This document shows, in pieces, positions 2,427 through 64,000 of a stretch of 64,000 bases of DNA (within the stretch, counting starts at the first letter, position 1; every line of letters begins with the position of its first letter). Origin of the DNA: Salisapilia sapeloensis CBS 127946 (lineage: Eukaryota > Protista > Oomycota); NCBI GenBank assembly GCA_023334545.1, contig JAADVB010000086.1:1-64000 (forward strand). The letters run 5' to 3'. The position numbers were made by a program, and so were the translations under genes. The notes below the pieces were generated by a model. The model did no database searches and was not told where the DNA came from. It saw only the letters and a program-made list of their open reading frames with translations.

Positions 2427-4523
2427 TCAGTTCGTCAGGTAAGAAGGCGTGGATGAGTGCCGAAGAGACGGCGCGATGATACTCTTGAGCGTATACGCTA
2501 CCTGCATGGACGTCGGCCGCTGGTCCGGGTCCAAGTTCGTACACTGCTCTGCGAGCTCCCGAATCGACCGCGGACAGTCGTCTCGGAACGGAGCTCGGAT
2601 CTGACCTTTGCGGACGAGGTGGGCGAGCTGCATGCCTGGAATCGGCGTGCCATCCTCCTGCATCCGCACGCTCGCGAACGGCGCTTCCTCCGTGTCGATC
2701 TCGGATAAGACGATGCCGAGGGAGTAGACGTCTGCTCGTTCCGAGTACTTTTTTCCGAGCACGATCTCTGGCGCCGTCCATAGCAACGTTCCGACGCCGG
2801 ACGTCATGGTCTCATTGAGCTTCGTCTTTCGACTGACGCCAAAATCTGTCAGCTTGGCTCTCATGTTTTTATTCAAGAGGACGTTCTTGCTCTTAATGTC
2901 TCGATGGACGACGACTGGACGCATGCAGTGGAGGTAGACGAGGCCTTCTGCAATGTCCATGGCGATGCTCAACTTCTCCTTTGGCCAGGTGAATTGGTTC
3001 TTGTGTTTATTCAGAACGACATCCAAGTCGCCTGCTTCCATGTACTCGACGACGACACAGAGGTCTTTCATAAAGTTCCAGCTGAGACCGATGAACGACA
3101 CGATGTTCGGGTGGTGGAGAGCTGCTACGAGTCGAATTTCGCCTGTGAACTGTTCTAGCGCGACCGTCTGCATGGCTTTTTCAGGCAAAAGTTTCTTTAT
3201 CGCGACGTACTTTGTCTCGAACTGTCCTAACCAGACTTCTCCATACGCACCTTTGGACAAGAGACGCAGGAAGGTGATATCTTGATACGAAATCAGTTTC
3301 TTCCGGACACTCGAGTCCGAGACGAACGTCTTGAGCGTCTCGGATTCGCTACAGTACTCTTCCACGGTCTTGGCGCCGCCACTCGACGTCTGCTTGGGTC
3401 GAGACTTGCGAGTCGTGACCATCGAGGAAGAGCCTTTCGGACGAACGGGCTCTTGACGCGTCGTTCGAACGACTGGATTGGAACGAGGTGCGTCCTGCTT
3501 TTCCCTCGCGACGCTCTCATCTAGATGGTACGAAGAGACTTGTCGGTCGGACGATAGAGACTCCCGACGTTGTCGCTGTCGAGCTTGGGACTCCATGATT
3601 GTGGGACCGAAAGGACCTCCAAGAGCCGGTGACTTGTCGTTCCGCTTCTTCCGACGGAGCCACCAGAAGACAATGCAACCAGCGACGACGACTGCTGCTC
3701 CGACGACGATGATGATGATCACCCACGTCTTGAGACCGCCGCTCTGCTGTGCACTCGTCTCTGCTGCTAGGAGCTTAGATACGTCCATCGGGGTAGGACG
3801 GCAGAAGGAGGCTTTGGACGAAATGCTGGACTCTAGGAGACAAGGGATGGTCGTATCTGGTTCATCTGGACAGGACGATGCGTCTGATTCTTCGAATTGG
3901 ATCGACATGACAGTCATGCTGCTCGATCCGACTGTGATCGTGTTCCGATAGACCTGTGGGTAGACCATGCCAGAGGCATTTGCGTCAGACCAGATGGGCC
4001 CACGCGAAGTCTCGAATTCACTCGTAGACTGGCCGTTGGGAGCAGTCATGATGTCTCCGACGGCACAAGTGAAGGTGGACGGAAGTCTGGAGGAACAATC
4101 CTTGTTGGTCGAGATATGAAACCCATCGCACTCTTCCACCTCGCAGCTTTTATTGAAAGAGGCGCTGGAGAGAGCGATCGTGTCCATGGAAGCACCCTTG
4201 GTGTCGATTCGATCGACATTCTTCTCACAAGCTGTGTACACGGGAGCGATGTGATTATAGTCCGAGTCACCTACGAGGACGTAGCCATAGGCCCATAGCA
4301 GTCCGACACGAGCTTCATCGGAAAGCGAAGTCCAATTTTTATTCTGTTTTGATAAGTACTTGTTAATGTCCACCGGCACGCCCGTGTTCACATTGGACAT
4401 GTCGCTCACATCCCCATCCAATAGGACCTCGGTGATCCGAGAGACGACGTTGGCGTCACCTGCTACGAGAGCGAGTATGCAAGCAGTCCAGAGTATCACA
4501 CTGGGGGTACATCGGTGCTCCAT
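2427..4523 (-). CDS. Single-pass receptor-like TKL protein kinase with Cys-rich ectodomain (intronless)
   Basis: ORF 2427-4553, first ATG at 4523; signal peptide (VILWTACILALVAGDA), TM WVIIIIVVGAAVVVAGCIVFWW, kinase motifs KGAYGEV, VAIK, HRDIKSKN, DFG, WTAPE. Confidence 0.92.
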   Translation of the reverse strand: MEHRCTPSVILWTACILALVAGDANVVSRITEVLLDGDVSDMSNVNTGVPVDINKYLSKQNKNWTSLSDEARVGLLWAYGYVLVGDSDYNHIAPVYTACEKNVDRIDTKGASMDTIALSSASFNKSCEVEECDGFHISTNKDCSSRLPSTFTCAVGDIMTAPNGQSTSEFETSRGPIWSDANASGMVYPQVYRNTITVGSSSMTVMSIQFEESDASSCPDEPDTTIPCLLESSISSKASFCRPTPMDVSKLLAAETSAQQSGGLKTWVIIIIVVGAAVVVAGCIVFWWLRRKKRNDKSPALGGPFGPTIMESQARQRQRRESLSSDRQVSSYHLDESVAREKQDAPRSNPVVRTTRQEPVRPKGSSSMVTTRKSRPKQTSSGGAKTVEEYCSESETLKTFVSDSSVRKKLISYQDITFLRLLSKGAYGEVWLGQFETKYVAIKKLLPEKAMQTVALEQFTGEIRLVAALHHPNIVSFIGLSWNFMKDLCVVVEYMEAGDLDVVLNKHKNQFTWPKEKLSIAMDIAEGLVYLHCMRPVVVHRDIKSKNVLLNKNMRAKLTDFGVSRKTKLNETMTSGVGTLLWTAPEIVLGKKYSERADVYSLGIVLSEIDTEEAPFASVRMQEDGTPIPGMQLAHLVRKGQIRAPFRDDCPRSIRELAEQCTNLDPDQRPTSMQVAYTLKSIIAPSLRHSSTPSYLTN

Positions 4524-33759: not shown

Positions 33760-33808
33760 CACACTTGTATCTCACGCGTTTATATTCTTCACGACGTTTC
33801 TACTCACT

Positions 33809-35089
33809 CTACGCTTGCTTCTGGTTTAACAAAGCTCCTTCCTGGATGATGTGGGCGCCATCGCCAATGAATGTCAGAAAACTGGCAGGAGGTGGGAGCT
33901 CCTGACCGAGTTCTGGCGGGTACGGAGCATCCAATTTCTTTTGTAGCTCGTCTGCTACTGCTCGACGTAAGAGCACGACGATGCAGCCGCCAAAGCCACC
34001 TCCACTCATGCGAGCGCCATATACGCCTTCGACGCTCCTGGCGCGTCGGACGAGCTCATCCAGCTCTGGCGTACTGACTTCGTAGTCGTCACGGAGAGAG
34101 TAGTGACTGTCGTACATGAGCTGTCCCACCTTGGCGTACTCCTTGTTCGCTAGGAGTTTGACCGTCTGGGTCACTCGATCATCCTCTGCAATGGCATGAC
34201 GAGCACGTCGGTAGGTTACATCCGACAAGTCCGACTTGATGCTTTCGAGCTGCTCGAGCGATGCATCTCGTAGCGCCTTGATGCCTGGATACTTCTTCTG
34301 GAGCGCACTCACAGCCTCTTTGCACTGCTCTACTCTGGACGCATATCCGCCCCCACTGTGCGTGTGAGTCACGTTGGAATTGCATACGACAATAGTGGTG
34401 TCTTCGTCTTCGACCGTGACGCGCTGCTTTTCATACGACCGACAGTCGATGAGCAAAGCGCATTGGCCTTCGCCACAGGAAGAGATGAACTGATCCATGA
34501 TGCCACATGGCGTATTGCAATACTCGTGCTCAGAGCGTTGGCAGAAGAGTGCCTTTTGCGTCGGCGTTACGTCGGAAATGTTAAATGCAGCTTCGAGGAA
34601 GGTTGCGTAGCTGACTTCGAGCGCCGCGGAGCTGCTGAGTCCACTCCCAGCCGGGACGCGGCTCACGATGGCAGCTCGGACGTTCATGTTTGAAAGTTTC
34701 GTGTGCTGGAGGTACATGGCAGCAACGCCACGGATATAGTTTTGCCACGTATGCTGCGGCGTGGGCGCTATGCGTTCGATGTCGGCATAGAACTCGGCAT
34801 GAGGATAGTCGCCGGACACGACGTGAGACGGTTCCCCGGCAGGACTACGTACACCGACGACAACAGTGGGCTTATCCAATGCAAGAGGTAGGACGAATCC
34901 ATCGTTGTAGTCGGTGTGGTCTCCGATCAGGTTGACACGACCAGGCGCCGTTGCGATGACCAAGTCCGACCGTGGGACGTTGGCTTCCGACGGGAAGGAC
35001 TTGTAGAAGAGACGAACGGCTTCTTCCGTGACCTCTTTGACTTTTTCCTGCGCCTCCATGGATGCACTTGTACTGCGGTCTTTCGCCAT
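33809..35089 (-). CDS. GALK1: Galactokinase (intronless)
   Basis: APGRVNLIGDHTDYNDGF, PAGSGLSSSAALE, CGIMDQ, GARMSGGGFGG; ATG at 35089. Confidence 0.95.
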   Translation of the reverse strand: MAKDRSTSASMEAQEKVKEVTEEAVRLFYKSFPSEANVPRSDLVIATAPGRVNLIGDHTDYNDGFVLPLALDKPTVVVGVRSPAGEPSHVVSGDYPHAEFYADIERIAPTPQHTWQNYIRGVAAMYLQHTKLSNMNVRAAIVSRVPAGSGLSSSAALEVSYATFLEAAFNISDVTPTQKALFCQRSEHEYCNTPCGIMDQFISSCGEGQCALLIDCRSYEKQRVTVEDEDTTIVVCNSNVTHTHSGGGYASRVEQCKEAVSALQKKYPGIKALRDASLEQLESIKSDLSDVTYRRARHAIAEDDRVTQTVKLLANKEYAKVGQLMYDSHYSLRDDYEVSTPELDELVRRARSVEGVYGARMSGGGFGGCIVVLLRRAVADELQKKLDAPYPPELGQELPPPASFLTFIGDGAHIIQEGALLNQKQA

Positions 35090-35546
35090 CGTCGAAATTA
35101 TGAGAATGGAAGATCGAGTGCTCCAGTCGCTGACGCATCTGTGTTGAAGTTCAGAGTCGGGGGTTTCTGATAATTCGTGTTTGAAGGTGGCGGAAAAGGA
35201 GCACTGGTGCATGTGAATTTGATTTAAGAAAATGACCTTTGTCTGCTGCGTATGTGCAGAGCAATATGTATGGAATGTGCAGGTTGCTGGTAGGATAGAG
35301 GAAGAGGTTGGCGAGGGGGAAGGAGGTGGACTTGAGGTCCGATCCAAGCTAGGGTTGGGTGGTTGAACTTCCTTGGCTTCTGAACTTCAAACACTTCTGC
35401 CACGATAAGCGATGATGACGATGTAAAGAAGCGACGCAACCGTCTATCTGTTGGCAGATAGTGCACATGCGCGTACTGAAGAGTGGCGACGCGCGATGGC
35501 AGACTTATACGCTTGCAGGTCTTTTGTCTAGGTTTCTACATGTTGT

Positions 35547-35582
35547 GATTGGTGGAAATTTATAAAGACGACATATGATTGG
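35547..35582 (-). promoter_or_regulatory. Two CCAAT boxes ~460 bp upstream of galactokinase
   Basis: GATTGG at 35547-35552 and 35577-35582 (CCAATC on the minus strand). A short motif that could be chance. Confidence 0.25.
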
Positions 35583-35899
35583 TTTAAATAATGTGTCTAA
35601 ACACGAATTTGGACACGAAAAATTGTTTGGCATGGAGATGAAAGACGCTGTCGAGTTCAGTAAATTTACGAGTTATTAGAAAGGAACCGAAGGTATATTT
35701 AGCTGCAAAAGTGCTGCTGGACATAACTTACCGATTGCATAAAACTTTTGCTACTTTAAATCTATATTGTCCAGTGTTAAAAGCTCGATATTGCTTACGA
35801 TGACTGACCTCTATCCAGCACGTGAAAAAGCTGTACGGACTGCGTACATGTCTAAGGAAGTAGATGCTTGCTTTTTTGAAGGAGCGCCTATTATGAAGT

Positions 35900-37310
35900 G
35901 TACTGATATGGTTGAAAGTGTATGCAGCATCGGTACAACCAAAATGTCAAGTTTCAACATCAATTGCTTCGTCACCTTGAGCGTGATCAGGATGACGAAT
36001 ATATGAGCTGCGATAATGTTGTTGGACGCTTTGTGGTCGGTTTTTCCTTCGTCCAATGCAAAATGGCTCGTTACAGTTTCAAATGGATCATGCTTCCTTC
36101 CGTATCACTCATCTAAAGGCCGTGCTCGCGTTAGATCAGTGTTCAGAGAAATTGGGGATTCGCATGTTGTCAGTCTATTTATGAAAATCGAATCCGCAAC
36201 AATTGCGATCGTTGTGAATTGCCGGTTTCGCTTTACCACTGGCCATTAAAAAACCAACGTAACACTTCAATGTAACTTCCACGCCAAACGAGGAGTACAA
36301 AAACAATTGATCGGTGGTGCCAATGGACACGCCGCTTCATACTCTTGGCCTATGTCGACTCTCGAGCTCCATCCTCTGTTGCAATTGATGCTTCCATTGT
36401 CATGCTCACAGCAGCATGATCTGTATGGAAGTTGCAAGATATAGATGAGGTTTTCGGAGCGAAGTAGGCCTAAAACGATATAGCCTTCGATATTTTTCAC
36501 CTCTTTCATCGATTTTAATCAAGCTGATTTAAGAGGCACAGTACAGATCACAGCTCGCACATGCTCATACTCATATTGCATATTTCGCCTCGCGTAATAC
36601 CTAATTGTCCTCACAACGAACACGGCCTTGATTCTTTTTGGTACATTTCTGTCTTGGTCTTCGACGCAATTAGGAGGAACCGATCTTCGAGAAAACTTCA
36701 AGACACGCCTGATGCTCGAAATGTGCAAATTTGAAAAAGCGCGCGAGAGACTCGGTGAGCTCTTCGCTGTTATTTTAAAACATACAAAGTACAGTGGTAG
36801 ACGGAGCAGTTTATCGATATTTGTAAATCACACTGTAGTATGTCCCACTAAAATGTCGAAGAGCTCAATGTTGCAAGTAAATCGAATGCAGCTTCAACCT
36901 AAAGGGCTTCTGAGGATACGCTCGACACCATTCCCCGCCAAGAAATGACAGATGAACGGACGATATACGCGGTTAGGAATGGAAAGGTAGACAGCGGCCT
37001 GAAAGTAGCACGAAATGCCGAAGAAATAGGCATAATACCCATTACAATTCGTCCATGCTTGTTTTCATAATATCGATTACCCGTTGAACGGACACTGCAT
37101 ACAATAGAAGCTGCTCTGATCGAGATAACAATTAGAGCATGGATAATTATGGCTGCACAGAATGATAACTTCTATATCCATTCTTTTATCCTGTTATTAT
37201 CGCTAAAGATTTCGAGGATACTCGAATCAGGCGATTTTAGCTTCCCATCCTTGAATAGTCTGAGCTCAACCGTGCAGGTGGTCGGTAACGAAGCAGCTAA
37301 GCTACTACTC
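35900..37310 (-). pseudogene. Degenerate hydrophobic coding region (copy A) downstream of LRR array A
   Basis: Minus-strand fragments with stops and frameshifts: LSFCAAIIIHALIVISI, VEAAFDLLATL, FEHQACLEVFSKIGSS, YSSFGVEVTLKCY, FVILITLKV; homologous segments at ~40050-41230, ~50180-51500 and 63455-64000. Confidence 0.55.
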
Positions 37311-37598
37311 TAGACTGAAGTTAGCAAAAGAATTGCTTGATACACTTGGATCGAAATGTCATACATCCAATAGGATCGTTTTTACTCTTAAAACGATGTG
37401 CCAAACGCTGCAGCCTTTACTCCTATATGCTAGATTTATATTATTGTATATAGCTGACAGAGTAAAAGCACAAGGCGTTTTGTTTGTGTGGTGTTCTGCG
37501 ACGTATCTGACTTGAATTGGAAGCACTATGCAATGTCGCTCTCGGAGTTAGTTTCTTTAAATTCTCCCGTTTGGATATTACTTTCTTCCCGTTTCTTA

Positions 37599-39548
37599 CT
37601 AATAAGGCTCATCCATCACTGGGTTGTGGCTCAAATTTCTATAAACCAGTGGAAACGTTTATCAACTATGCGTCAGATAAAGCACTGGAGTTGCTTACAA
37701 AGAGATAAAGTGAAGTTCCATGCTCATGTACACTTGTAGAGCACTTAAAGCTAGAAAAGCTTCTTTCCAAGGTCTTGGATGGAATCCGTCACCCAATTTG
37801 CTATACTGAAGGTAACTAAAACATTTAATGACCCATGGGTGGTGCCATAAGTGAGTGTAAAGTATCAATCACATCATTGAGCGTAGCTTCATACATTTTG
37901 TTGATCTTTGGAATATACGCGTTGATCATGGCCAGGTTTTTCTTGCCCATCGATCTGCATGCATAAATATATAGTTACATTAGATTGAAGCATCACGCTG
38001 TAGACCGATAAATACGCACACTTCCTCCAGGTTCAGCCAATCGCCATCCCATGCTTCCAAAGTAGCTTCATTCGCAACTCTATACTAAGTTTAGCATACA
38101 AATATCAACTTTTGAATGGTTTAACACGACAACGTACAGTTTCTCCACGGTACTGAGAGCACCGGTGTGCGATTTATCAAGAAATGTCATTTTGTTTTGA
38201 CTCAAATCGCTGTCCAATTTGTTCAGTCGCATGCTCTCAAAAGAAAGCACCAAGATGCTTACACTTGTTCGAGATACTGACACTTGCTTTCACGTAGACT
38301 TTCCTGCTCCAGTAAATTATTCGACAGATTCCTGCCATCAATACTTGTGACTTCAATATAGCTAAGTGAATGAAGAATGGTGCCTTACAAATCTTTCACC
38401 TTCATTCCAGCGCAGTCAAAATCATACAAGTTATTGTTGACAAGCTACCTAGTATATACACGGGACATTATTTCTATCTGCAAGTCCACATAATGTATAG
38501 AGCTTACGCTTTGTATAGTTTGGGTATCTTCGCGTTGAATTCGAAAATATTATTGTTTTTCAACTCGCTATAAACAAGAGCAATGAACTCTATGTCGGAA
38601 ATGGACCATTAGTAGAGATTTACAATATTTCGAGGTGATTCCATTTACCAGTGAAATTCTCCAACTTCCCTTGCTTACTTATTCTGGATTAGACGCGTTA
38701 GAAAGTTGATAGACAAGCATCAAGCTTCAAGATTAGCATGAACACTTACAGTATGCTGACGTTGGGAAAGTTGTCTGGGTTTAGATTCTTGAAAAACGTT
38801 CTTTCTGTGTACCTATTCAAATCGACTTTTTACTAAGCAAATAACTTGTTGGCACTTTGTGCCATATCGAACGTACAGGGTTTTCAGCATTGGAAAGTAG
38901 CCGCGCATTGTCTTCATATGTTTGTAAGACAGGTACCTGCATTCCGAACTAAGGCGTTAGATATAAGGAGAAAGCAACTAACGACATAAAGCTTACACAT
39001 TCCCGAGCTTGGGCATCTCCGCCTTAAATTCAGAGATACTGTTATTGTTTAGCTCCCTGTACCAATACGGAAGGTAAAGTTTGTGACGCTAATGAGTAGT
39101 GAGCGATGACTCATAAGTGATAGAGGTGCTCCCACTTGCCAGTGATATTTTCCAATATTCCCTTGTTGTTCTGTATAATTTGTATATGATAGAGGATGAG
39201 GATTTAGTTATTGAAGCGGTAGTACCGACAGGAACACTTACAAAACGGTAAGGTTGGGAAAGTTTTTTGCATTTAGACTGATGAGCAATGTACCGCTCAT
39301 GTACTTTTCCAAATCAGAATTTAATAAGCACTTTACTTTAAATGTCAATGGCCATATTAAACTTACAGACTTTCCAGCTTTGGAAACTTTCCGAATATTT
39401 CTTTAATACAATTATCTTGTGCTTCGTTACAGAAACCGAATAAGTTAAGGTTTGTATGTCGAGAAGATACTTCCAGTCTATGTACATTCTCTTGGCGTGT
39501 CGATACAGGGCACCATCGAGCCTTACGATGCCCTGTCCCTTCAGATTG
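37599..39548 (-). pseudogene. LRR exon array A: 14 single-LRR exons (60/63/69/72 nt) + 117-nt exon + terminal NLSHNP exon
   Basis: Exons (minus strand): 39548-39486, 39426-39367, 39304-39242, ~39177-39115, 39056-38997, 38936-38877, 38812-38750, 38683-38624, 38567-38508, 38448-38389, 38331-38263, 38209-38138, 38079-38020, 37954-37895, 37815-37699, 37638-37599. All introns phase 2, 53-66 nt (one 79). Peptides e.g. ELNNNSISEFKAEMPKLGNV, DLSQNKMTFLDKSHTGALSTVEKL. One in-frame TAG and four damaged splice sites. Confidence 0.85.
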
Positions 39549-40049
39549 CTACAAGGTGAAGATCATTAGTGAGACGTTTTACCGAAAGTTTAGCAAAGTC
39601 GCCTACATGTCCACCTGACCGGAAAATTGCCTCGGGTATTCGGCATATATCTCTATCAATGATCAAAGCACTAGAAGGCTACAGATGATTTCTCGAGTTG
39701 TGAACTTCATCGCGATGAAGAGCGACAGTGGGTGCTGGCAAGAGAATCGGAAAATGGAGGCTGGAAGCATCAATCGATGTCGAGCGAGGCATCCAAGGGA
39801 TATCTCCAATACCGAGGGTACGACGCAATAGCATCCTCGCAATATCCGATTAGAATCAAATCCACGGTATTTCTTCTCGCAGCATAGGCGGTCTAGGACT
39901 TACAGAGCTTATGACCAGTAGAATCATGACCGTATACGACGCGGATAATGCTTCCACGACCACATTTCCAACAAGTACGACCGGTCATAAAGGTTCATTA
40001 TCATCGGACCCCTTAAAGGTTTCTAGTAGAACGAACGCACAAGCGCATG

Positions 40050-41230
40050 ATTTCATGCCTATCCTTTGATTCCATACCTCGAATGACATCTACGGACGGT
40101 ATCATCAATCAGAGACCATAGACAAGATGAGCATGACGTAACGCTCTTCAGCTTGTATTTGCTCACGATAGAACTGGTTCATAAACGAGCGGTAGCCCGT
40201 GACCAGTGATGGCCCGATTTCTTTATAGAATCCGAAATCAATTTTGGGTCTAGAAGCTAGTTGACAAATTGAATCGAGTGCGGTAATAGCTGAGTGTAAC
40301 TTGATGCCGAAATCTTGAAAGGGTCTTCTTACACGATACCGTCATCAGCCATATTTTGCGAAATGTGGAAACTTGAGCTACGCCGGACTATAGCATCTCG
40401 TATAGAAAGTCAGGCCTTTCAGAACCTCTGGTTATATCAGTAGTCCATAGTCCATGTCTGAAGAAATGCTTAAAGATCGGGCTCTAGAGTACGGTCCTTA
40501 TGGCTAGATGCCGCCTTATCGTTGTTCCGTTCCAACCGTCAAAATCTCCCTCACATAAATTTGGAGAAATAGTTTGAGCTGTCAACCGTAAGTCTCGATA
40601 TAGCTCGCTTACTTCCAGCGCCTCCAAGTTACCAAAGAAGTACATCACAGCTACCCAGACAGCGTGCATGCTTCCATGATCCAGCGCATCCTGAGTCTTA
40701 ATCGTATATGTAGCCTTGGTCGCGTCCGATGATCTATAGTTTCCTTCTAGTTTCGTCTAACGCAAAATTTCGTCGCATCTTTCAAAACGGACAATAGATG
40801 AATCTATTTTTAGCAAAAGTACTATTGGATAGTGATCGTGATGATCCTGGACACCCTTCTTCCAAGTTTCCGCCTAGAAACGGCTACGATAGTTCGACCA
40901 TGCTTTAAAGCATCCATTGGTATGTACCAAGAGCTGTGTCCAAACTCAGACCTTCGGAAGCAACGCGAACCAAGTCGTATATTGTTCTGTGACAAACTCG
41001 TATGTTCTATCATTTGCAAGTTCTGCGGAGACAAAATCGACACTGACAGATGAAATGTTCCATGGTAAGTGAGTATGCAGCCAGTGCATGTAGTACAATC
41101 TGCGGCTGCATTTAACTACGCAACGTCATGTCCGTTTGTCGACACGTAGGATAAAGCTAGAATCTATGACTCCAACAAGAGTTTATAAATGGATGATCTG
41201 AGTTTCAATAGTTACAGCGATCACTCGTAG
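40050..41230 (-). pseudogene. Degenerate hydrophobic coding region (copy B) downstream of LRR array B
   Basis: AAAIVLHALAAYS vs copy A AAIIIHALIVIS; ISSVSVDFVSAELAND vs VSSVSSVALQVEVACD; HHDHYPIVLLLKIDSS vs HFEHPAWLEVFSKIVSS; shared DNA words (agctgtgat..gtact, gctatatcg, cgtcat.ct.atc) at roughly the same ~4-kb offset as the LRR exons. Confidence 0.5.
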
Positions 41231-41625
41231 ACTAATTCAGCAGCTACTGTAGGTAAATGGTGACTTTAAACAGTCTGACGCACATGTTGATGAGTTCATA
41301 TTTTTAAAGTGCGGAAAGCTCTTAAAATAGGTATGCAGGGCGCTGTGAGGATTGATGATGTCTATCGTTTCGACTGAAAAGTATGTTATATGTAGCTAAA
41401 TGCAAAAGATTTCATTTTTGTGGTACTATGAAATGTCGTTCACGCAGTTGGTGTGTTAAAACTCTTGGTGCTCGATAGTCCGTCGTCTTTCTCCTCAAAT
41501 TGGGCGACATTCACGGGTTTCCAGATTAGACAAGCACCGAATCATCTTTGAAATCCCTACGTACTACGTAAATTAAATGAGCTTACCGTTGAAAGTGCGT
41601 ATATGAATACTCACGAAGAATCAAG

Positions 41626-43259
41626 CTATGAGGCTTCATCTTTATCTTCACCATTTATCGGGTTGCCCATCAAATTTCTACTTTTCCAATACAAAGTTTT
41701 TCCGTTTTGCATGATAAAGAAACTTTTGCCCACTTATGCTTGTATGTTGATCGTATTCATGTAGGTTTCCACCCTTGAAGATATCTTTTTAGAACCCAAA
41801 TTCTCTCTATATGGCTTTGGAAGAAAATCTTCGATCTCAGTTTGTTGTGCTGGAGGTACCTATCTCATACAAACTATCCATTAACATCTCAATGTATACT
41901 TTAAACTCTTTTATCCGTGAAGTAGATCATAAGTTCATAAACTTTCTTCATATGCGGTATATTTCCAGTGACATTGGAGAGACTGTTATTTTTCATGAAC
42001 CTATTCACATTTCAAACTCCATTAGAGTTAATAATTACGCTGGTAATCAATATAAACTTACACTCTCTCCAAATTAGAGCAATCACCACTCCATTTCTTC
42101 AACTTTGAATTCTCCGCGAATATGCCATTTATGTATAATCAATTTATCGGACTACAAATATAAAAACTAAATGGCGTACAGTATCTCAACCTAACTGAGC
42201 GTATCGGCATGCTGATCACCAAGGTTTTTGATGTTGTTTTAAATTAAATCGCTGTGCAAAATATATAGTCGCTTGCTTTTAGAGAGACATAAGGACACGT
42301 ACATCTTTTTGAGGTGTTTGCACTGATCTCCACGCAGACTCTTTTCTGTCAGCATGCTGTCCGACAGATACCTATAATCCGCTCTTATATCTTCAACGTA
42401 TAATAGTGTCTGTACAGATTTGCTTTACAAGTTTTTGAGCTTTGTCTTGGAGCAGTCAAAGTTACTGAGATTGTTTCCGCTAAGATATCTATTTTAAAGA
42501 TAAAGCATCAATTAAAAAGGTGTAAACGACAGATTGCATAGAGCTTGCGCATCGGTGATGTTCTCCTTCGTAGCGTTAATGATAGAGGTTTTGTTGTCCT
42601 CTAAATCCCTATGTGAGTGTGAAGCATCAAACCAACGTCTTGGATTAGCTATAGTCGAAGGCTTACAAGTATTCAAAGTTTTCCCCTTTCCCAGTGGTTT
42701 TCTTCAACCTGCCCATCTTGCTTACTCTAGTTCATAAGTAGTAAACGGTTAGCGTCAAACTATTGAAGCAACCGTGTTGATATGAACATTTACAGTTTAC
42801 TCATTGCTGGGAATCTGTCTCCATTCAGACTTTTGAGCAATGTTTTGCTCATGGCTCTGTTCAAATCAACCTTTAGCACGGACATCACTTTATCGCTTGT
42901 AGCCATATTACACGTACAGGTTTATCAGGTTTTTAAATATGCAAAATATCTCTTCGATAGGATTTTCACTCAGCCAACTGCATGCACATCGTGAGTCAAT
43001 CCTCATGTAATTATTTAGTACTCCAAGTTGCTGTACAGAGTTTTGTTGTATTAAAATTGGGTAGTGTTTAGCTTCGTGATCTTGTTGCAAGCCAGGTTGC
43101 TACAGTGCAAGAACTGTTAGTAGTTTTTACGAAGATATTATCGATACGCTTCCACTTCCTCCATCTCAGGTGGAAAGATCAAGGTCGATAGATTTTTATC
43201 GTCGATGCTTCTATCCTGATATTTTCCCAGCTTAGAAGCGACACCCTTGGCAAATATGC
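41626..43259 (-). pseudogene. LRR exon array B: tandem paralog of array A with 10 single-LRR exons + long exon + terminal NLMGNP exon
   Basis: Exons: 43259-43154, 43099-43037, 42977-42918, 42856-42794, 42726-42667, 42608-42549, 42488-42429, 42371-42303, 42251-42180, 42121-42062, 42000-41941, 41859-41738, 41677-41626. Same exon lengths and order as A, phase-2 introns 51-67 nt (one 81). Peptides e.g. WLSENPIEEIFCIFKNLINL, YLSGNNLSNFDCSKTKLKNL. Three in-frame stops, several damaged splice sites. Confidence 0.85.
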
Positions 43260-44162
43260 CTGTGAACGCTTAGAGCAGAAGGAAAGTGAGTATAATGACC
43301 CGATGGATGAATGTCATCGTGGCAATAAATCCAGTGGTTGCTAGCAGATAACTTTTGAAGTGAGGGGCAAAATTGAATGAAACTATTGGGCGACGTAGGG
43401 TAAGACATCAAAGGAAATTCTCAATTTCGAAAGGTATGATGAGAGGATATTCTGGCAATGGGTGACTACAATTAAGTCGAACAAGTTTCTTTTCGCGTCA
43501 TACGCGGTCATGAACCTATTTAAAAATGACTTATAAAGCTTTTTAATTGAATATGACGAAGCCAGGCTGCCCAAATGCACAAAATGAAAAATTAAATTGA
43601 TAACCAATATTGAATAAACATAGGTGACTAGGAGCTGAGACTTTAGGAAGTCATTCTAAGCGTAGGAAAAAACTCTTCAACAGTATTTTGAGTCCTGGAA
43701 CTGGTTGGAACTTTTAATAAGAGTCAAAATAAATACTTCTGCGTTCTTTAATATGCAGGCAAACGCTGCAAGTCTAGAAAGGCTTGAAAGTCAACTGCAA
43801 ATCTGTTAAAAGCTACGAAATAAGCACACTTAGCTGCTTACTTGTGCACTTTAAACGGACTGACAATTGGCGATTAATCCTGCATAGAGTTTGGGAGATA
43901 GACTGCTCGATAACGATCGTCTATTTTCTAGCTTTGATCTCCTGAGATGAGCATAAATGATCTTGTGAAGATACACAACAATCATGCCTACCAAATGACT
44001 AAATTGGGTGTTCATATAATAAGAATAAACTAAAACTTAGACGATATTATAGCTGTAAAATATCGGCTATAGCAAAAAGATGGAGCAAGTATCGAAAGGA
44101 ATTGCTGGGCGCTAATTGCTAAAGGAGGAATTTACGGAAGCAGAGCGATAAGCTCAAGATAT

Positions 44163-44531
44163 CTTGGACGTACAGTCGTCTTCCAATCGCTGCTGGAGCA
44201 GTTTTGCAAAAGTCTAGCATAAAATATAGGTAACGGTACCATATGCGTAAGATGGCCCGCTCAATCTGTTGGCTACTACCACAGGCCTGCTCTGTCTCAG
44301 CACATAAAAGTAGTTCGGTCAATTTAAAAAAGATGACATAAACGTTAAAAACTGAAAAGAAGAGGATAACGACGATGTATCATTGGATTTTAACCGATCA
44401 TGTCAAAGCATGGTCTTGTTCCTAATACGCCTGTTGAAAGAACACGGACAATGCCGCATATATCTGCCCATTAGCACGTTATGAACTACTAGATCATTGC
44501 CAGTATATCATACAGTATGCTTGCTTTAAAT
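44163..44531 (+). repeat. ~370-bp direct repeat, copy 1
   Basis: cttggacgtacagtcg...catacagtatgcttgctttaaatt; matches 50525-50893 with about 5 substitutions seen by eye. Confidence 0.95.
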
Positions 44532-44746
44532 TTGTAGCTTTAAACCGTGTTTTTGACTTATGGCCAACATCCATGAGTTTCAATGCGAGCCATCGACACT
44601 CTCTGTCCATTGAGCGTACAAACGCAAAAAGAAACTGTACACACCTGAACAATATGATATAAAATGCTGTACATGATCATTAGATGTAAAAACAGGCATA
44701 TGTTCAGCCCATTTTTGTTTTTCGCGTCATTCATACCACGCACAGC

Positions 44747-47700
44747 CTACGTTGCTTTTTGTAGTTGTGCACATTCTTCTGCACGACAGCGAGTCGTAAA
44801 AATCCATTCAGTGTTTTTCAAGTCGCTTTGTCCAAAAAACCAATCGACGATACCCATGTATCCCAGATAAGATGCAAGCATCACCGCCGAGCATTCTATC
44901 TCTTCCCACTCCTCCGAAAGGTGATCTTCACGCACTCGAAGGGCCATAGTATCGTTTATGTTGAAGTCTTCCAATAAAATCATCTCCGCCCAGCTGACGA
45001 ACTTGTCCTTGTCACCAGCAGACATGGTGACAGCATAGTGGAGTGGATGCATTCTAAGGAGCTTCTTGGGTACCTTGGACAAATCCACAAAAGTAGGCTT
45101 TGCATGCATAGTTGGTAACACGAGGTTGTCAGTCACAAGCTGCTCTTCTCCAGTATTTGTCACCTTGTTATCTTTCTGCTGCTTCTGAATCATCCTGACA
45201 ATATCCGCCATAGAATATCGATTTACTTTGCATGTTCTCTTTGTGCGTTTTTGACTGGCATTGTCTCCTTTAGAAGATGAGCCTACTTGATTAGTCTTGC
45301 CATGTCTAGGTGCCACATCATGCTCACAGGCTTTATTGTCCTCAGATATCACATCTCTTTGATTTTGATCATTTTCTTCCGATGACACACCTTGACAGGC
45401 CTTGTTGTCCGCAAGTGATGCATCTTCTTGCTCGATCTGATCGTCTCGGCTCAGGCGTTCATACTCATGGTTCGCTGGAAGCGTACATCCGGGTTCTTCC
45501 CCCAAGCTATCAAACGATGGGATGCTTGAATGTACACTGGTGGGAGCGTCTTCGTTAGCATCTTCTGCAGTACAATAAGTCTCACTTTCAGCGTCGAGGC
45601 AGGAAAAAAGTTCTTCCAATTTAGACGCAAATCGGTCAGGAGGAAGAGTAACCTCGATGCCATCCAATGTAGAACAAACATTCTCCAATTCAGTGTCCAG
45701 TTCGGTAATGGCTGCTTCTAGCTTGGCTGTAAAATCGTCAAGAGCATGAAAAGTCTCATTAGTGCCTTCTGCTATACCGAGATTCACGCTTTCTTTGTTC
45801 AATGTGGAAGCGGCCTCTTGTAGCCTAGATGCGAATTCATAGGGAAGAATGGCAGCCCCACTGAGTGCATTTTGTATCTCTTCGTTGTTCATGAGCTCTT
45901 CGATCCCGTTTAAAGTGCCTTCAATCGTGCTGGATGCCGCATCCGTAGCGGACATAACAAGGTCTAGTATCTCCGGGACGAAGCTAAGACCTACGAACGC
46001 GAGCGGTGCACAAACCATACCTATGCCCGCGCGGATCTTTTTCCTTTTTATCTCCTTTTTCTCCTTTTCGTTGATGGCTGTCAATAGTTCTCTCTCTCTG
46101 ATTAGGCGCTCTTTTTCCTTTTTGTCAAGCGCGGTCAACAATGCCTTTTCTTTCTCAGCATCCCGTGCATTTTTTTCTCGCAGAGCCTTCAATAGCTGTT
46201 TTTCTCTTTCAATTTGTCTCTCTTCCTTTTCATCTATAGCTTTTATCAGTGCCTTCTCTCTCTCAAGTTGCCGTTGCTCCTTTTCCTGTAAAATGGCTGA
46301 TAGTTTGTTCTCTCTCTCAAGCTGCCGTTGTTCTCTTTCCTGTGAAATCTTCGCCATTGCTTTCTCCCTCTCCATTTGTCGCTGTTCCTTCTCTGCTAAA
46401 ACTTTAGCCAGCGCTCTCTCTTTCTCCGCTTCTCGTTTTCTATTTTCTTCTAGCGCCGTCGTCAATGCCTTAAAGTTGTTTTTAAGTACCTCATAGTTAC
46501 GCTCAGTAGCTGTCTGCCGGCTGTCAAGCTTTCGGACACTTTGTTTAATATGTTGAACCCAGTCTGCATTCTCCACATTTATCTTCATCATTTCAGCAAA
46601 GAAGTAATCCTTCTGTTCTTGCGAAATAAGCTTTCGCTTTTTCATTTCTGCGTTGATTTGGATAAACACATTTCGTTCATCATTTTCGTAGACATAGCAG
46701 CGACTGATTGACATCATTAAGCCCTTCTGAACTAATGGTTTTAGTGTTTCTGGTTGAAGATGGCAAACAGCTAGTTTCATCACAAGACCGATATCTTTCA
46801 TAGATGTCGAACATAAGAGCGTCGAGCGGATTAATTGGGCTTGTTCTGAAAGCGTCATGTCTTGACCTTCGATTAGTTTCTGAGTGCACTCTTTAAAGTA
46901 GACTTTCATAGTCTCCACTATCATGTCTCGTGTTTCATTTATTGAACTCTCGTCTTCTTCTGCTTCTGAGATGAGCGATTTGGCGTTAATACTTTTGTAA
47001 GGATCGAGGCCAAAGCTTATCATAGCCTTGAGTGCAGTCAGATTTCGATAGACTGCAGCATGCTGCATCAGCGTCAGTTCATCTGAAAATCTCGTCGTTT
47101 CCATCCACTCCTTGTTTCCGTTGATCCAATTCGTGATAACGTCTATCTGCTCAGTATCTCCCGTTAAAAATGCAAAGTAGAGCATCTCAAGTCTGTGGTC
47201 ATGCAAGACGGAAGTGAGTGTGCGTTTCCACTTCGAGTCTTTGAGAGACTCCATAGCAGATTTAGCGTCTTCCGATCTTGCTATCATCTCGCTCACAGAT
47301 TGTTGAGTGATCGACTGACGTAAGATTCCTTGTACAATGTCACGATTCTTACTGTATAACCCTCTCGTTAAACTTGTATATGGATCCAAAAGAGCCACCA
47401 TAATATCGGCATTTTTATTGCTTTTGGCAAAGCACATCGCAGTTCTGCCAAGACGGTCTCTTGCATTCGGGTTTGCTCCGCATTTAAGCAACACCTTTGC
47501 AACATTGACATGTCCTTCTCGAATGGCAATATGAAGTGGAGTATTACCAAATTCACATGTAGCGTTGAGGTTCGCACCACTTTTTAATAACGCAATTGCC
47601 ACCGCCACTTGACCATTTTCGGCAGCGATATGAAGTGAAGTATTGCCAAACTCACACGTAGCGTTGACATGAGCGCCATTTTCTAGTAACATGTTTGCCA

Positions 47701-48070
47701 TTGTCATATGATCCGTTTTGGTAGCAATATAAAGTGGAGTGTAACCAAACCAATCCAGTTTGTTGACGTCAGCACCATTTCGTAGTAGCACCTTTGCCAC
47801 CTTCACTTTGCCATTTTCAACAGCGATGTGAAGTGGAGAGAGAAAACAGTTATTTTGCTTGTTAACGTCTGCTTTATACTGTAACAATAGCTCGATCACT
47901 TCGACATGACCACCTGACACCGCCATCATCAACGGTGAGAAGAATTCGTCGACATCTCCATTTTCCCAGTTCACGTCACCACCCTTCTGAATCATTTTGC
48001 GAACTCCTTCTAGATCTCCTAATTTTGCGTACTTCCATAGCTTCTCATCTGTACTATTCATTCCAGGCAT
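44747..48070 (-). CDS. Intronless ankyrin-repeat / coiled-coil protein (1107 aa)
   Basis: About 7 N-terminal ankyrin repeats (SPLHIAVENGKVKVAKVLLRNGADVN etc.), further ank-like units centrally and at the C-terminus, 7x18-aa charged repeats, hydrophobic segment IRAGIGMVCAPLAFVGLSFV. Confidence 0.9.
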   Translation of the reverse strand: MPGMNSTDEKLWKYAKLGDLEGVRKMIQKGGDVNWENGDVDEFFSPLMMAVSGGHVEVIELLLQYKADVNKQNNCFLSPLHIAVENGKVKVAKVLLRNGADVNKLDWFGYTPLYIATKTDHMTMANMLLENGAHVNATCEFGNTSLHIAAENGQVAVAIALLKSGANLNATCEFGNTPLHIAIREGHVNVAKVLLKCGANPNARDRLGRTAMCFAKSNKNADIMVALLDPYTSLTRGLYSKNRDIVQGILRQSITQQSVSEMIARSEDAKSAMESLKDSKWKRTLTSVLHDHRLEMLYFAFLTGDTEQIDVITNWINGNKEWMETTRFSDELTLMQHAAVYRNLTALKAMISFGLDPYKSINAKSLISEAEEDESSINETRDMIVETMKVYFKECTQKLIEGQDMTLSEQAQLIRSTLLCSTSMKDIGLVMKLAVCHLQPETLKPLVQKGLMMSISRCYVYENDERNVFIQINAEMKKRKLISQEQKDYFFAEMMKINVENADWVQHIKQSVRKLDSRQTATERNYEVLKNNFKALTTALEENRKREAEKERALAKVLAEKEQRQMEREKAMAKISQEREQRQLERENKLSAILQEKEQRQLEREKALIKAIDEKEERQIEREKQLLKALREKNARDAEKEKALLTALDKKEKERLIRERELLTAINEKEKKEIKRKKIRAGIGMVCAPLAFVGLSFVPEILDLVMSATDAASSTIEGTLNGIEELMNNEEIQNALSGAAILPYEFASRLQEAASTLNKESVNLGIAEGTNETFHALDDFTAKLEAAITELDTELENVCSTLDGIEVTLPPDRFASKLEELFSCLDAESETYCTAEDANEDAPTSVHSSIPSFDSLGEEPGCTLPANHEYERLSRDDQIEQEDASLADNKACQGVSSEENDQNQRDVISEDNKACEHDVAPRHGKTNQVGSSSKGDNASQKRTKRTCKVNRYSMADIVRMIQKQQKDNKVTNTGEEQLVTDNLVLPTMHAKPTFVDLSKVPKKLLRMHPLHYAVTMSAGDKDKFVSWAEMILLEDFNINDTMALRVREDHLSEEWEEIECSAVMLASYLGYMGIVDWFFGQSDLKNTEWIFTTRCRAEECAQLQKAT
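46049..46426 (-). repeat. Seven tandem 54-bp (18-aa) coding repeats, consensus EREKAL.KAL.EKE.RQ.
   Basis: EKERALAKVLAEKEQRQM / EREKAMAKISQEREQRQL / ERENKLSAILQEKEQRQL / EREKALIKAIDEKEERQI / EREKQLLKALREKNARDA / EKEKALLTALDKKEKERL / IRERELLTAINEKEKKEI. Confidence 0.9.
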
Positions 48071-50179
48071 CGACAGCCTTTGTAATAGGACTTGGTACTG
48101 CGTCGAATGAATCTTAGGCTAGAAAAGCCCAAATCAAAAATGAGACTGCCCATAAATAAGAACCGGCAGAGGGAGAGAAAACCGATTTAGTAGATATTTC
48201 CATAAAGTAGAACAATCCAACGAAAGGAGCCTATTTGGATTAGTTGAGTCTTTAAAACACAGCATGAAGTACTTTAAAGGGCCAACTGTGTTCAGATGAT
48301 ATTTTTTCGCCGCTATCGTGTTTAGTATCGTATTTAGCTCAATAGATAGCGAGGTTATATCCATTTATAAGTATCGATTGATGATTACTATACCCGAAGT
48401 GTATCCTTCCACGATATAACTTCGCTAAATTCTTCTGCATTTAGCCCACCCTTTCGATTGACATGCCAAAGTCCCCGCAAGGCTAACCATTGCACGTTGC
48501 CTGTACTCCTATACGATCAAGCTTGCTATTCTACAAAGTACTTTCTAAGAATTTTTTTATACTTTTTTACAAGCCTTTTAGATGAAATTTATTTTCTCCC
48601 AAACTTATGCTTTTAATATGTTTAGCGAACGTTCATGAAATTGTAAGGTGGCTTTAAACGAGGATATTAAGAAATGAAGCCTATCTTCAATTCCATGTTT
48701 TCAGTTTGGGTATTAAAAGTAATCTCTACTTCACCAGGCTAAAAGTATATTTTTCCATCATTCGTTCAGTTACAAAACGACGACGTGATCCCAAATTGCG
48801 AGCTAGCTCAAGGACTGATGAGATTGGAGCACACAAGAAGATGGAAGCTGCGTCTACTTAGACATGTTCAGACCAATATGATGAATTGTTTAAAATGACT
48901 CCAGCTTGTCGATATACGCAAGAGCAGAATAGCATGGCTTCCTGAATGTATCATACCAACAGCATACATTTCATTCGTCTCCTGAGGTTTTAGTCAAACA
49001 GGAGTAGCTCATACGCACGACTTGAGCTAGTAACTTGACAGTATTTAATGTAAATTAAGAATGTGATCGAATGTGTACGCTAGAGACTTACGGATAACGT
49101 GCTTAGATCATAAACGAGTATCTTGGGTCGAATCGTACATGAGGAGCTCTTGCTACATCTAAAGTCGTGAAAGTCATCACAAATAGTTCCAGCAAATGCA
49201 TTGAGTATTTTCTGAGAAGAAGCTACGTCTATAGCGTACCCACGAAAGTCAATATGACTTCCGAGTTTAAGTCAATTGACATCCTTCTGCACTTTATACC
49301 CACTTCGTGCTGCTGAGTATCTGTCAAAAGCGATAAAGTGCATTTGAAAGGTACAAGGAATCCAAGTTTCTACTTCATTCAAACATTAAAAGGAACTTCA
49401 AATAATACTTTGTTTACGATGTGAATAGTTCCATGAGGAGCTACCATTACGTACATGACTGCCACCTACTTATCTATCATCATCTACATAAGAGTGGATA
49501 ACATCTTTCTTAAAAGCAAGATTCAAAGTGAAGTTCGTTTAATTTATCTTTGATGAATTGCTCATGCTAATCTGCCAAGACCTACCCAGGCTACCAAGGA
49601 CACGCTCTTAATCCTACTTTGTCTTACAAAAAGGTGAATCGTATGATCATCCAGCAGCTTTATCGGTGTGTACTTTCTTAAGGCAAACGAGCTAGTTCAA
49701 TTGACCCCCGATGAAGGCTGCAATAGCAACGTCAGTCTAGACATAGTGGGTAGAGATGTAGTTGCACTATTTTGCTTTCAACAATAAAAGCGTCTGGGTG
49801 TTTACGAAGAATCTAAAAGTCGACTGAGATCGTTCAGTTCTATATTGATGTCAGTACTCACTTGCCTGGCTGCTTCTTCAAAGAAGTTAGATCCAGTTCT
49901 ATTTGCAATTTTAAAAGTCTATCAAAATGGTAATAAACTTACGCAGCATCTAAAATCACCTTTCGCGCTAACAGATTTATCTACACAATAAATTGAATAT
50001 AGGCGGTATACATGTAAGTAGGAGTGGTAAAGATCTTATGACTCACAAATAACTAGCTTCAGAACATTGACTAAAATTCCAGCGAAATTTCGCGTTATAG
50101 TAATTTTTGCCATTTAATGAATGACTGATGCATATTCCGCTTTACATCTTAAGAATTAATATTACTCCGCAATAATGTG

Positions 50180-51500
50180 CACTAGCCAGAGCTATATCAG
50201 TGGAAGATAACACTTCAAATTCGCTCTCGATTGAGTCGGTATCATCTCGTTATTAAATACTGCTAAATACATATTCACCAAGGTCCGAATACAAAGCATC
50301 TAACAAGGGCTGATATAAATATGAATGAGCCTCTCATAATATACGACGAGGATAGTCGCCGAATGCACAAGTCGAAGCACAAAAGAAATGAACTAAAACG
50401 TATACGATACTGCATTCATAACATAGGCTATAGCTTGCAAAAAGGATCATATATCTAGTCCGAAATACGGAAACTAACTGATGATACTTTATATATGCTC
50501 TAGCAGGATAGTAAATAATGATAACTTGGACGTACAGTCGTCTTCCAATCGCTGCTGGAGCAGTTTTGCAAAAGTCTAGCATAAAATATAGGTAACGGTA
50601 CCATATGCGTAAGATGGCCCGCTCAATCTGTTGGCTACTACCACAGGCCTGCTCTGTCTGAGCACATAAAAGTAGTTCGGTCAATTTAAAAAAGATGACA
50701 TAAACGTTAAAAACTGAAAAGAAGAGGATAACGACGATGTATCATTGGATTTTAACCGATCATGTCAAAGCATGATCTTGTTCCTAATACGCCTGTTGAA
50801 AGAACACGGACAATGCCGCATATATCTGCCCATTAGCACGTTACGAACTACTAGATCATTGCCAGTATATCATACAGTATGTTTGCTTTGAATTGAATTA
50901 AATTTATGCGTTTAGTCAGCTATCTACGTATAATGTAGCGCTTGGCAGCAACATTGCATCAGGACCAATTTTGAATAAACAGACACGTTTTAATAGCTCA
51001 TGACATCATATATACTGAGATTGGTTATCAAGATCGATTAGGCTCATTGGACTAACTTGGCATGTCCATCTTTACTGACTTAAATGGTGTAACGGAGTAA
51101 AAGCGCTAGCAATTTGTCTTAGAAATGTTGAATAGCCCCACGGACGTAGACTACGTAGCTGCAACTTGTGAGATTTTAAATCTGAAACCAACGGCCTATC
51201 ACATCGCAGCTTATCTGTGTCATACTACTTTAGCAAAGTGAATGAGAATAAACACTGAGAGTGGACTTTGTTTCAAATAAGTTTCCCTCCAGTCGGGGAA
51301 GGCCTTGCGTAGAGTTGCGATCAAGTCACGGATTGCCGTGGGACCCACAGCAATAACATTGACTAATGTCTTGTGACATTCATCGTTGCACAACATTAAG
51401 CTATATACGCGGAGCAGTCGTGCGAGCTTAAACACAAAAGCTTTTCAACAGCAAAAGAATCGCAGAACCGATGGTAACATCAATCTGTTGTTGCTAATCC
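50180..51500 (-). pseudogene. Degenerate hydrophobic coding region (copy D), apparently interrupted by or adjoining repeat copy 2
   Basis: AIRDLIATLRKAFPDWRETY (~51320) vs ACDLLATLSCSPFHWDEY (copy C); ISNNRL vs SDNNRI (copy A); NLKCYL (~50210) vs TLKCYV/ILKCYL. Confidence 0.45.
50525..50893 (+). repeat. ~370-bp direct repeat, copy 2
   Basis: Near-identical to 44163-44531, same orientation, ~6.36 kb apart. Confidence 0.95.
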
Positions 51501-53013
51501 TTTGGAAGGGAAGTTGATCAGGGAGGAGCATGATGTGCAAAATATCAAGGTTATCATACAGCGTTTAACGCTCTATTTGAACTTGCTACATACAAATCGA
51601 TGTGAAACTTCTTTAAGACATCATACTAGTTTCTTAGTAGCAACTAGAACAGACAATCCTGTGTTCTACCATTGAGGCGGATTATTGGATCAATACATAC
51701 TCTTTTTCGCTATTAAATAGGTTTTTAAATCAAGAGTACAAGTCCAACCATCACCACTATTCTAATAAAGTTTCTCTCCAGCACCAAGCATCCGGAATGC
51801 ACAACGCAATATTTGTTCACCAAATTGTTTACCGGTTAACATTCATTCTACTCACTATTCATTCCAGCTGACCTTATTTTGATGCAGAATATTATATCCA
51901 GCGTTCAACTACTCTTAAATTTCCTTTATTCTAACAATCATTGCGGTATATCCTCGTTTCTAGCTATTTTGTAGTCCATAACTAGCATTGGCCTATTGGA
52001 GCAGCAAACTTCAGCAAGTGCCGTTTCGTGATCACTTCTCGGGCATGATTCCTTTTATTGATCTCTACCTCGAATATCATTTATTTTTCGCAGATCAAGC
52101 ATGTCATGAGCCTCCACATAAGCAGTAAAAACTGTTAGGAAGATATTGTATACATGTACGAAAGATTACTTTCCTTTTGAAATTCGAGTGGCTCTTACTT
52201 TTGAGCAATTCAGGATATCTAAACAATTGAAAATGCAGATCCTATGCCATTTTCGATTCTTATACTTGTAGTACTTTACCATGCCGCTTGGATGCATCGG
52301 CAAGCATTTTTGTGTTTGGCAACGCATATAAAAGTGTAAGATAGCAATGTAAATTAGAGGTGATGGCCATGCGGAATCCCAATAAGACAAACATGGATGA
52401 AATACATGTACGATGGGTCTAAGAATGTCATCAGAATGTTCACGAAACGGATTTAGATGTACAATATGCTAATTTCCCTGTGTCGTGACAACGATAGACG
52501 AAGGCACGCGTAGAAAGATATACATAGTTCATGGAATCGCTAAATTAGACCCATTGTACATTGATATTATCTAAATAGCCGCAGAATTCTGCTACGGAGT
52601 TGACTGTACCAGCATTGCTTTATCATTAGCACATTGGATCATATCAAAATGAACTCCAAAGTTACCACACCTCTCTGTTACGTACTAGTTCAAACTTTAA
52701 ATAAATTTTCTACATGGCATTAAGATCGCAATCACGTAAAAAGAGAAAAAAGAAGCAGTTTCGTAGCTGCGGGACGATTTGGATCTATGGAACAAATCTA
52801 AATAAGAAGAATCTCGGCGATAACTAGTCTTGTTGTGCTCTTGTGCGGTCGCGGCGACGCTTTATAAGCACTAGCTGCGACATTCCTGATCTTGTGCGCA
52901 TGTCGATTTCTCTTCTACGAAATATGACGCCACTGTCTTATTATTCCGGCTAGCAAAGGGTTGATCTGTGATGTTTCCATTCCGCTTACTTCTCCCGCGA
53001 GACAACACTGATC

Positions 53014-63454: not shown

Positions 63455-64000
63455 GCCGCGTTCGTGCTGAATGCCGACTCGGCAACTTTGGGGAGTTGCT
63501 TGTTGTAACCCTGTTCATGATATTCGAATCGGGTCATTCCTCGGTTGCTGACAATAGTCGACTTTGCTTTGCTACCTACCACTGGAAGCTCAAGGTAGCA
63601 CTTTAATATAGTTTTACCGTCAAACGAGGAGTATGAATTCAAGCGATCGTTCGTCTTTGATGCAATCAGGAAGAAACGATCTTTGAGAAGACTTCAAGCC
63701 ACGCCGGATGCTCGAAATGTGCAAATTTGTAAAAGCGCGCTAACGACTTGGTGAGCTCTTCGTTTTACTTGCGCTATTGAGCTCTTCGCTATTATTTCAG
63801 AACATACAAAGTACAGTGGTGGACGGAGCAGTTTATCGATATTTGTAAATCACACTGTACTCGTCCCAGTGAAATGGCGAACAGCTCAATGTTGCAAGTA
63901 AATCGCATGCAACTTCAACCTGAAGAGCTACTGAGGATACGCTTGACACTATTCCCCACCAAGGCATGATAGAGGAACGGATGATACACACGGATAGGAA
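63455..64000 (-). pseudogene. Degenerate hydrophobic coding region (copy C), 3' part; continues beyond the window
   Basis: 63653-64000 aligns clearly with 36657-36979 (e.g. cagtttatcgatatttgtaaatcacactgta identical); 63455-63640 aligns more weakly with 36115-36300, with a ~350-bp deletion relative to copy A. Confidence 0.75.

Follow-up and report, generated by a model that had tools for sequence, protein, structure and literature searches.

On the minus strand of the 64-kb window (the whole stretch of 64,000 nt that we analysed), a row of very small exons raises the question of whether they form a gene that encodes one leucine-rich repeat (LRR) per exon and whether that gene still works as a modular, diversifying recognition receptor, as the original prediction had it. 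We located ~15 small exons between 37599 and 39710, mostly 60 nt long and spaced 116-127 nt apart (Table 1; hereafter array A), which bears out the regular ~120-bp exon-plus-intron periodicity first described for this strand. The row, initially placed at 37599-39548, is real, but the gene reaches further, to an exon 1 remnant at 39710-39527. Donor-to-donor distances over 12 consecutive steps are 125, 127, 118, 120, 127, 126, 116, 119, 126, 125, 118 and 125 nt, and the introns measure 53-79 nt. Unit sizes are 60 nt (seven units), 63 nt (two), 69, 72, 111 and 117 nt, with a terminal exon k of 40 nt, stop codon included. The fourteen exons of 60, 63, 69 or 72 nt counted earlier thus have the right sizes, but b1, c1 and e are damaged; only 11 units (a1, d1, a2, b2, c2, d2, f, g, h, i and j) and terminal exon k are clean.

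Table 1. Exons and repeat units of array A and position of its paralogue, array B (window coordinates).
Feature	Coordinates	Strand	Remarks
Exon 1 remnant (start codon, signal-peptide-like N-terminus)	39527..39710	-	184 nt, wrong phase, 4 in-frame stops
Unit a1	39367..39477	-	111 nt, open frame, AG acceptor, GTAAGT donor; last 60 nt form an a-type repeat
Unit b1	39242..39304	-	63 nt by homology; homologous acceptor reads AA
Unit c1	39115..39170	-	56 nt, frame broken, AT donor in place of GT; 70% identical to c2
Unit d1	38997..39056	-	60 nt, phase 2, clean; good LRR core
Unit a2	38877..38936	-	60 nt, clean
Unit b2	38750..38812	-	63 nt, clean
Unit c2	38624..38683	-	60 nt, clean; donor GTAAAT
Unit d2	38508..38567	-	60 nt, clean; good LRR core
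Unit e	38389..38448	-	60 nt, canonical splice sites; first full codon is an in-frame TAG (38447-38445)
Unit f	38263..38331	-	69 nt, clean
Unit g	38138..38209	-	72 nt, clean
Unit h	38020..38079	-	60 nt, clean; c-like, conserved Trp
Unit i	37895..37954	-	60 nt, clean; d-like
Unit j	37699..37815	-	117 nt, clean; one repeat and a C-terminal cap-like stretch
Terminal exon k	37599..37638	-	last LRR core, then stop TAG at 37601-37599
Array B, colinear tandem paralogue	41442..43382	-	approximate limits; no second a-d block, more decayed

Each exon holds one repeat unit, and every intron has the same phase and falls at the same position of the repeat. The split codon is the second L of LxxLxLxxNxI, at core position 4 of the LRR, where L, V, F, A or I occurs. 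The expectation that all introns would interrupt the same Leu-type codon in phase 2 holds for the phase, with 14/14 junctions after the second codon base; Leu itself occupies 8 of the 14, the others being Val (three), Phe, Ala and Ile (one each). Among the 14 spliced units, 13 have lengths that are multiples of 3 (54, 60, 63, 69, 72, 111 or 117 nt). The exception is c1, whose 56 nt break the frame. Such frame-symmetric exons imply a modular design, as the original prediction had proposed. Units a, b, c and d form a 4-unit super-repeat (38508-39426, minus strand) that gives the encoded protein a higher-order period of ~81 aa; units h and i resemble c and d (conserved Trp, IPK motif).

Chance occurrences of AG and GT dinucleotides and open frames in AT-rich non-coding DNA might imitate such a row, and a permissive chain search (any AG...GT, 54-120 nt) did return long chains throughout the window and in shuffles, with no discrimination between them. 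Our strict chain test required a YAG acceptor, a GTRNG-type donor, an open phase-2 frame, exons of 54-120 nt and introns of 50-80 nt. With these realistic splice motifs, chains of at least 3 exons on both strands of the window (128 kb) were confined to arrays A and B, at 39056-38508 (5 exons), 38331-37699 (5 exons) and 42977-42667 (3 exons, array B), and 0/1000 shuffles gave a chain above 2 exons. Spacing is also regular (~122 nt), the LRR motif is enriched over shuffles, and unit-by-unit homology to array B shows a codon-position gradient. A chance origin, to which we assign practically no probability, is already refuted by the strict chain test together with the A/B codon-position identities. 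Tandem Repeats Finder and a direct-repeat search detected no repeats in array A because its units are too diverged at the DNA level.

The repeats themselves are LRR-like. A loose LRR core pattern matches 6 times in 259 residues, a count equalled in 3/5000 shuffles, and a strict core with Asn matches 3 times in 259 residues (equalled in 15/5000), an enrichment of p ~0.001-0.003. Aligned with one another, the 21 units from both arrays follow x-L-x-x-N-x-L-x-x-F-x-G-x-x-P-x-L-x-x, many of them in degenerate form; a, b, c and h units are irregular repeats of 20-21 aa. The claim that each exon is one LRR of the form LxxLxLxxNxI fits about half of the units, and the short repeat of ~20 aa was correctly foreseen, most units having 60 nt. 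When we searched two spliced runs of intact exons against Pfam, LRR_4 (E 0.0054), LRR_6 (0.0064), LRR_1 (0.011) and LRR_8 (0.5-0.6) were found, all below the gathering threshold, and the sole non-LRR family matched was DUF4313. A 19-column single-unit profile, built from short units that lose the split Leu, reached E ~1 against PDB sequences, with the dynein LC1 LRR protein at the top. The 138-aa C-terminal run found 12 word-sharing sequences, none at E <= 0.01, among candidates of 76-241 aa, a length range that leaves out full-length relatives.

The short LRR classes, "bacterial" and SDS22-like, have repeats of 20-22 residues. Array A resembles them in its LxxLxLxxNxI core and ~20-residue length, with LRR_4 as its best Pfam match, but it shows no significant sequence match to them and about half of its units have no Asn. 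Its product would be an irregular short-repeat LRR-like protein.

Array B allowed us to trace the history of the locus. From unit a2 onward the two arrays are colinear, with equal lengths in 9/9 shared units. Exon identity between A and B is 0.57 overall and 0.60, 0.69 and 0.43 at the first, second and third codon positions, intron identity lies near the shuffle level, and GC3 of the exons is 0.51 versus an intron GC of 0.37. From these codon-position identities, the intron identity and the exon GC3, we conclude that A and B are old and were long under purifying selection before they died separately. The intron lengths of A and B match within 0-4 nt despite near-random intron sequence identity, which suggests that indels are rare or that intron length is under selection.

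Best exon matches, where resolvable, are colinear. The highest exon-exon identity within or between the arrays is 70% (c1-c2), over a background of ~48%; with introns near the shuffle level, this makes the A/B duplications old. The extra a1-d1 block of A, absent from B, is a second version of a2-d2 at a period of 487-492 nt, with an exon identity of 63-70%. Because a1-d1 resembles its sister block more than it resembles B, the block was duplicated within A, and this duplication too is old. Comparison of exon content among paralogues, proposed as a check on the original prediction, thus yielded a difference of one a-b-c-d block (~490 nt) between A and B. No two exons, whether at non-colinear positions or in different arrays, are near-identical, and we see no sign of recent shuffling or conversion. 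The suggestion of a diversifying system finds no support at this locus, as the arrays are colinear, exon identity peaks at 70% and no ongoing diversification is seen. There is no evidence at the array A/B locus for an active diversity generator.

Array A retains its introns and carries disabling lesions, the combination that marks a duplicated (non-processed) pseudogene. In exon 1, in-frame stops occur at codons 16, 36, 44 and 54, and its 184 nt end in phase 1, compared with 170 nt and phase 2 for the homologous exon of B (43317-43148); over the first 23 codons, 40/69 bases are identical between the two. Unit b1 keeps the frame only through a cryptic GAG acceptor 9 nt downstream, which gives a 54-nt exon from 39295. 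In total, array A has 5 in-frame stops, 2 frame breaks and 2 splice-site defects. One 3574-nt Logan contig from DNA run X1 (which may itself be the source of the assembly) is identical to the window over 36914-39790, and the lesions therefore are not one assembler's artefact.

Array B has stops in exon 1 (one, at codon 16), x0, g (two) and j, and splice lesions at d (GC donor), h (AT acceptor), i (TT donor) and j (AT donor). Its homologue of unit e (42488-42429) has an open frame, and its final stop lies at the place homologous to that of A. The lesions of B are stops and splice-dinucleotide changes, and none of its exons has a frame-breaking length. Against the general picture of separate inactivation, codon 16 of exon 1 is a stop in each copy (TGA in A, 39665-39663; TAA in B). 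Given that exon 1 of A has four stops, this may be a coincidence (roughly 7%); alternatively, it may reflect a short conversion tract.

Based on this information, we read array A, with a probability of about 0.8, as a duplicated pseudogene of an exon-per-repeat, probably secreted, LRR-only oomycete family. To produce the layout, symmetric exons would have been duplicated in frame again and again, by unequal crossing-over within short introns. A tandem gene duplication would then have given A and B, followed by long purifying selection, for which the basis is that second codon positions are the most conserved, third positions are near saturation and lengths are equal in all nine shared units. 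Inactivation probably struck each copy separately, and in B it came earlier or went further.

Decay is uneven along array A. The first 138 codons (exon 1, a1, b1 and c1) contain 8 or more lesions, compared with 1 in the 260 codons and 11 canonical introns from d1 to k (Fisher p ~0.001). The d1-k part was under constraint until recently, or still is. Every repeat-region lesion lies in a unit that can be skipped without a frameshift, and because decay is uneven, there is a slight chance that array A has a function that relies on skipping, or lost one recently.

When assaying for transcripts, we used RNA data from the same organism. Four RNA runs contain the neighbouring galactokinase gene, and three of them (X2-X4) were compared over 33800-39790: depth was 225-323 with 0 mismatches on the galactokinase (33800-35087) and 0 over 37200-39790. 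In a search of RNA runs for 37450-43449 (arrays A and B), no run contained as much as one in twenty of the words of this stretch. The proposed check for transcripts across the array A junctions accordingly came back negative (depth 0 in three runs), and at the contig level the same three runs contain no transcripts with alternative exon use. These data are assembled contigs from one study with few samples, in which rare or stage-specific transcripts may drop out; we therefore speak of no detectable expression of array A, which is short of proven silence. At this level of evidence (contig data, one study), the lack of expression is that of a pseudogene.

Could array A nevertheless still work? 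It would have to start from an unrecognised 5' exon or promoter, skip c1 and e, use the cryptic acceptor of b1 and be expressed in an unsampled life stage. Skipping would keep the frame, since the units are phase 2-2 and 13/14 have lengths that are multiples of 3; the d1-k stretch has its single lesion, and exon GC3 is still coding-like. The b1 acceptor, however, is GAG, the least favoured type. The homologous exon 1 is full of stops, and when we searched 39360-41300 for another ATG exon that combines a signal-like peptide with a usable phase-2 donor, nothing convincing emerged; no intact start or signal-peptide exon was thus found in this interval. Alternative splicing has been reported for brown-algal ROCO LRR exons (PMC11378527), but RNA depth over array A is zero in three runs beside the well-covered galactokinase, and the sister copy B is clearly dead. 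Taken together, we consider a working array A unlikely and retain the pseudogene reading.

Does the locus encode a receptor? The frames of A and B stop directly after the last repeat (in A, at the terminal TAG), and neither array is followed by a transmembrane, kinase or other signalling domain, as a receptor of the RLK/RLP-like type would be. ORFs downstream of array A have no Pfam match. A downstream "hydrophobic module" was considered as part of the array A gene and rejected: the frame ends at 37599, and 36152-36979 belongs to a dispersed high-copy repeat. With a reading frame that ends after the last repeat and no signalling domain, the word "receptor" has no basis, and the predicted recognition-receptor system gives way to a locus with at least 8 lesions, no RNA contigs and no membrane or signalling domain. 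The signal-peptide-like exon 1 and the type of repeat suggest that the products of intact family members would be secreted binding proteins with a solenoid fold.

Both arrays lie in an AT-rich island of ~17 kb (35500-52800) with a GC content of 0.38-0.43, compared with ~0.51 in the flanks. Besides the two LRR pseudogenes, the island contains repeats and a single ankyrin gene of low GC3, and its flanks carry ordinary housekeeping genes. The neighbouring galactokinase has its best named matches in Globisporangium, Pythium and Phytophthora, at 55-61% identity, in keeping with a divergent oomycete as host.

Several repeats accompany the arrays. The dispersed high-copy repeat, noted above at 36152-36979, lies at 36152-37070 and has a DNA depth of 2500-3000, compared with ~42 nearby. 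A second copy, 81% identical, lies at 63488-64000; diverged copies occur in RNA contigs, and the contigs of DNA run X1 break at the repeat. The ORFs of this repeat contain no Pfam domain. Two direct repeats of 300 nt (44158-44457 and 50520-50819), 99% identical and 6362 nt apart, enclose ~2.4 kb devoid of long ORFs together with an intact ankyrin-repeat ORF (44747-48070). Their arrangement is LTR-like, though no pol-like ORF was seen. Inside the 1107-aa ankyrin ORF, in-frame internal repeats lie at 46200-46402 and 47487-47838, with four 54-nt copies and four 99-nt copies, the latter ankyrin repeats.

Two silent colinear arrays within a 17-kb AT-rich, repeat-bearing island could also be viewed as a store of LRR exons from which gene conversion or ectopic recombination would supply expressed members, and so generate diversity. 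Modular, frame-neutral exons would permit such transfers, and brown-algal LRR-only loci have been suggested to act as a reservoir (PMC11378527). Both arrays, however, span a whole gene copy, from start exon through splice sites to stop, and are not bare cassettes; no exon pair exceeds 70% identity and the order is colinear, so no recent transfer is visible. We regard this role as highly improbable. For the same locus, VLR-like cassette assembly would call for an incomplete germline gene and intron-less donor cassettes, whereas A and B are full gene copies. The broader proposal, in which the arrays live on as a reservoir of exons, or as genes spliced under certain conditions with their damaged units skipped, and give a stramenopile parasite a combinatorial repertoire of secreted LRR proteins built from 20-aa cassettes, the shortest exon-per-LRR system known, strikes us as quite improbable too. 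Decayed gene copies remain our preferred reading of both arrays.

Exon-per-repeat LRR genes are known from several lineages. Plant ERECTA/SERK-type LRR receptor kinases have about one LRR per exon and phase-2 introns. These kinases and the gonadotropin receptors have a TM-plus-kinase or 7-TM part and 24-aa repeats, whereas array A stops after its repeats. Gonadotropin (LH/FSH) receptors likewise have about one LRR per exon and are cited in PMC11378527 for their phase-2 design.

The closest counterpart is the ROCO family of Ectocarpus and other brown algae, in which each LRR occupies one 72-nt phase-2 exon and the genes are clustered, with many pseudogenes (PMC3341825, PMC11378527). Array A shares with the brown-algal ROCO "type I" genes (Ectocarpus, Saccharina) one LRR per exon, phase-2 introns and frame-symmetric exons, and both are stramenopile. 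It is also like them in its clustered loci and in pseudogenes with stops or frameshifts; clusters of genes plus pseudogenes are the rule in the brown-algal family (PMC3341825, PMC11378527). The brown-algal repeats, however, are 72 nt/24 aa and fused to a ROC-COR GTPase in a cytosolic protein, whereas those of array A are mostly 60 nt/20 aa in an LRR-only frame with a signal-peptide-like start. Near-identical shuffled exons and alternative splicing are documented for the brown-algal genes; array A has no shuffling signal and no transcript.

Tetrahymena has arrays of 90-bp LRR exons, with >98% of the preceding introns in phase 2 and an origin by serial exon duplication and unequal crossing-over (PMC6564038). 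Constant-length exons, phase 2 and a "junction" amino acid shared across exons are common to these arrays and array A. The ciliates are an unrelated lineage, however, and the Tetrahymena exons are longer (90 bp, 30 aa), number tens of thousands and are pericentromeric and subtelomeric. Precedent for single-LRR phase-2 exons, to which the original prediction had appealed, is therefore well founded in brown-algal ROCO genes (PMC3341825, PMC11378527) and Tetrahymena (PMC6564038). For oomycetes, our full-text literature search returned no description of exon-per-repeat LRR arrays.

ORF-based views miss micro-exon genes of this kind, a warning to annotators. Uniform phase-2 exon-per-repeat LRR genes are a textbook footprint of exon duplication, and the design has been proposed as a diversifier of recognition proteins in brown algae and ciliates. 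To this the array A/B locus adds only a snapshot of birth and death, a decayed tandem pair with one old 4-exon block duplication. That an oomycete has this design too, with a 60-nt/20-aa unit that is unusually short, widens its range within the stramenopiles.
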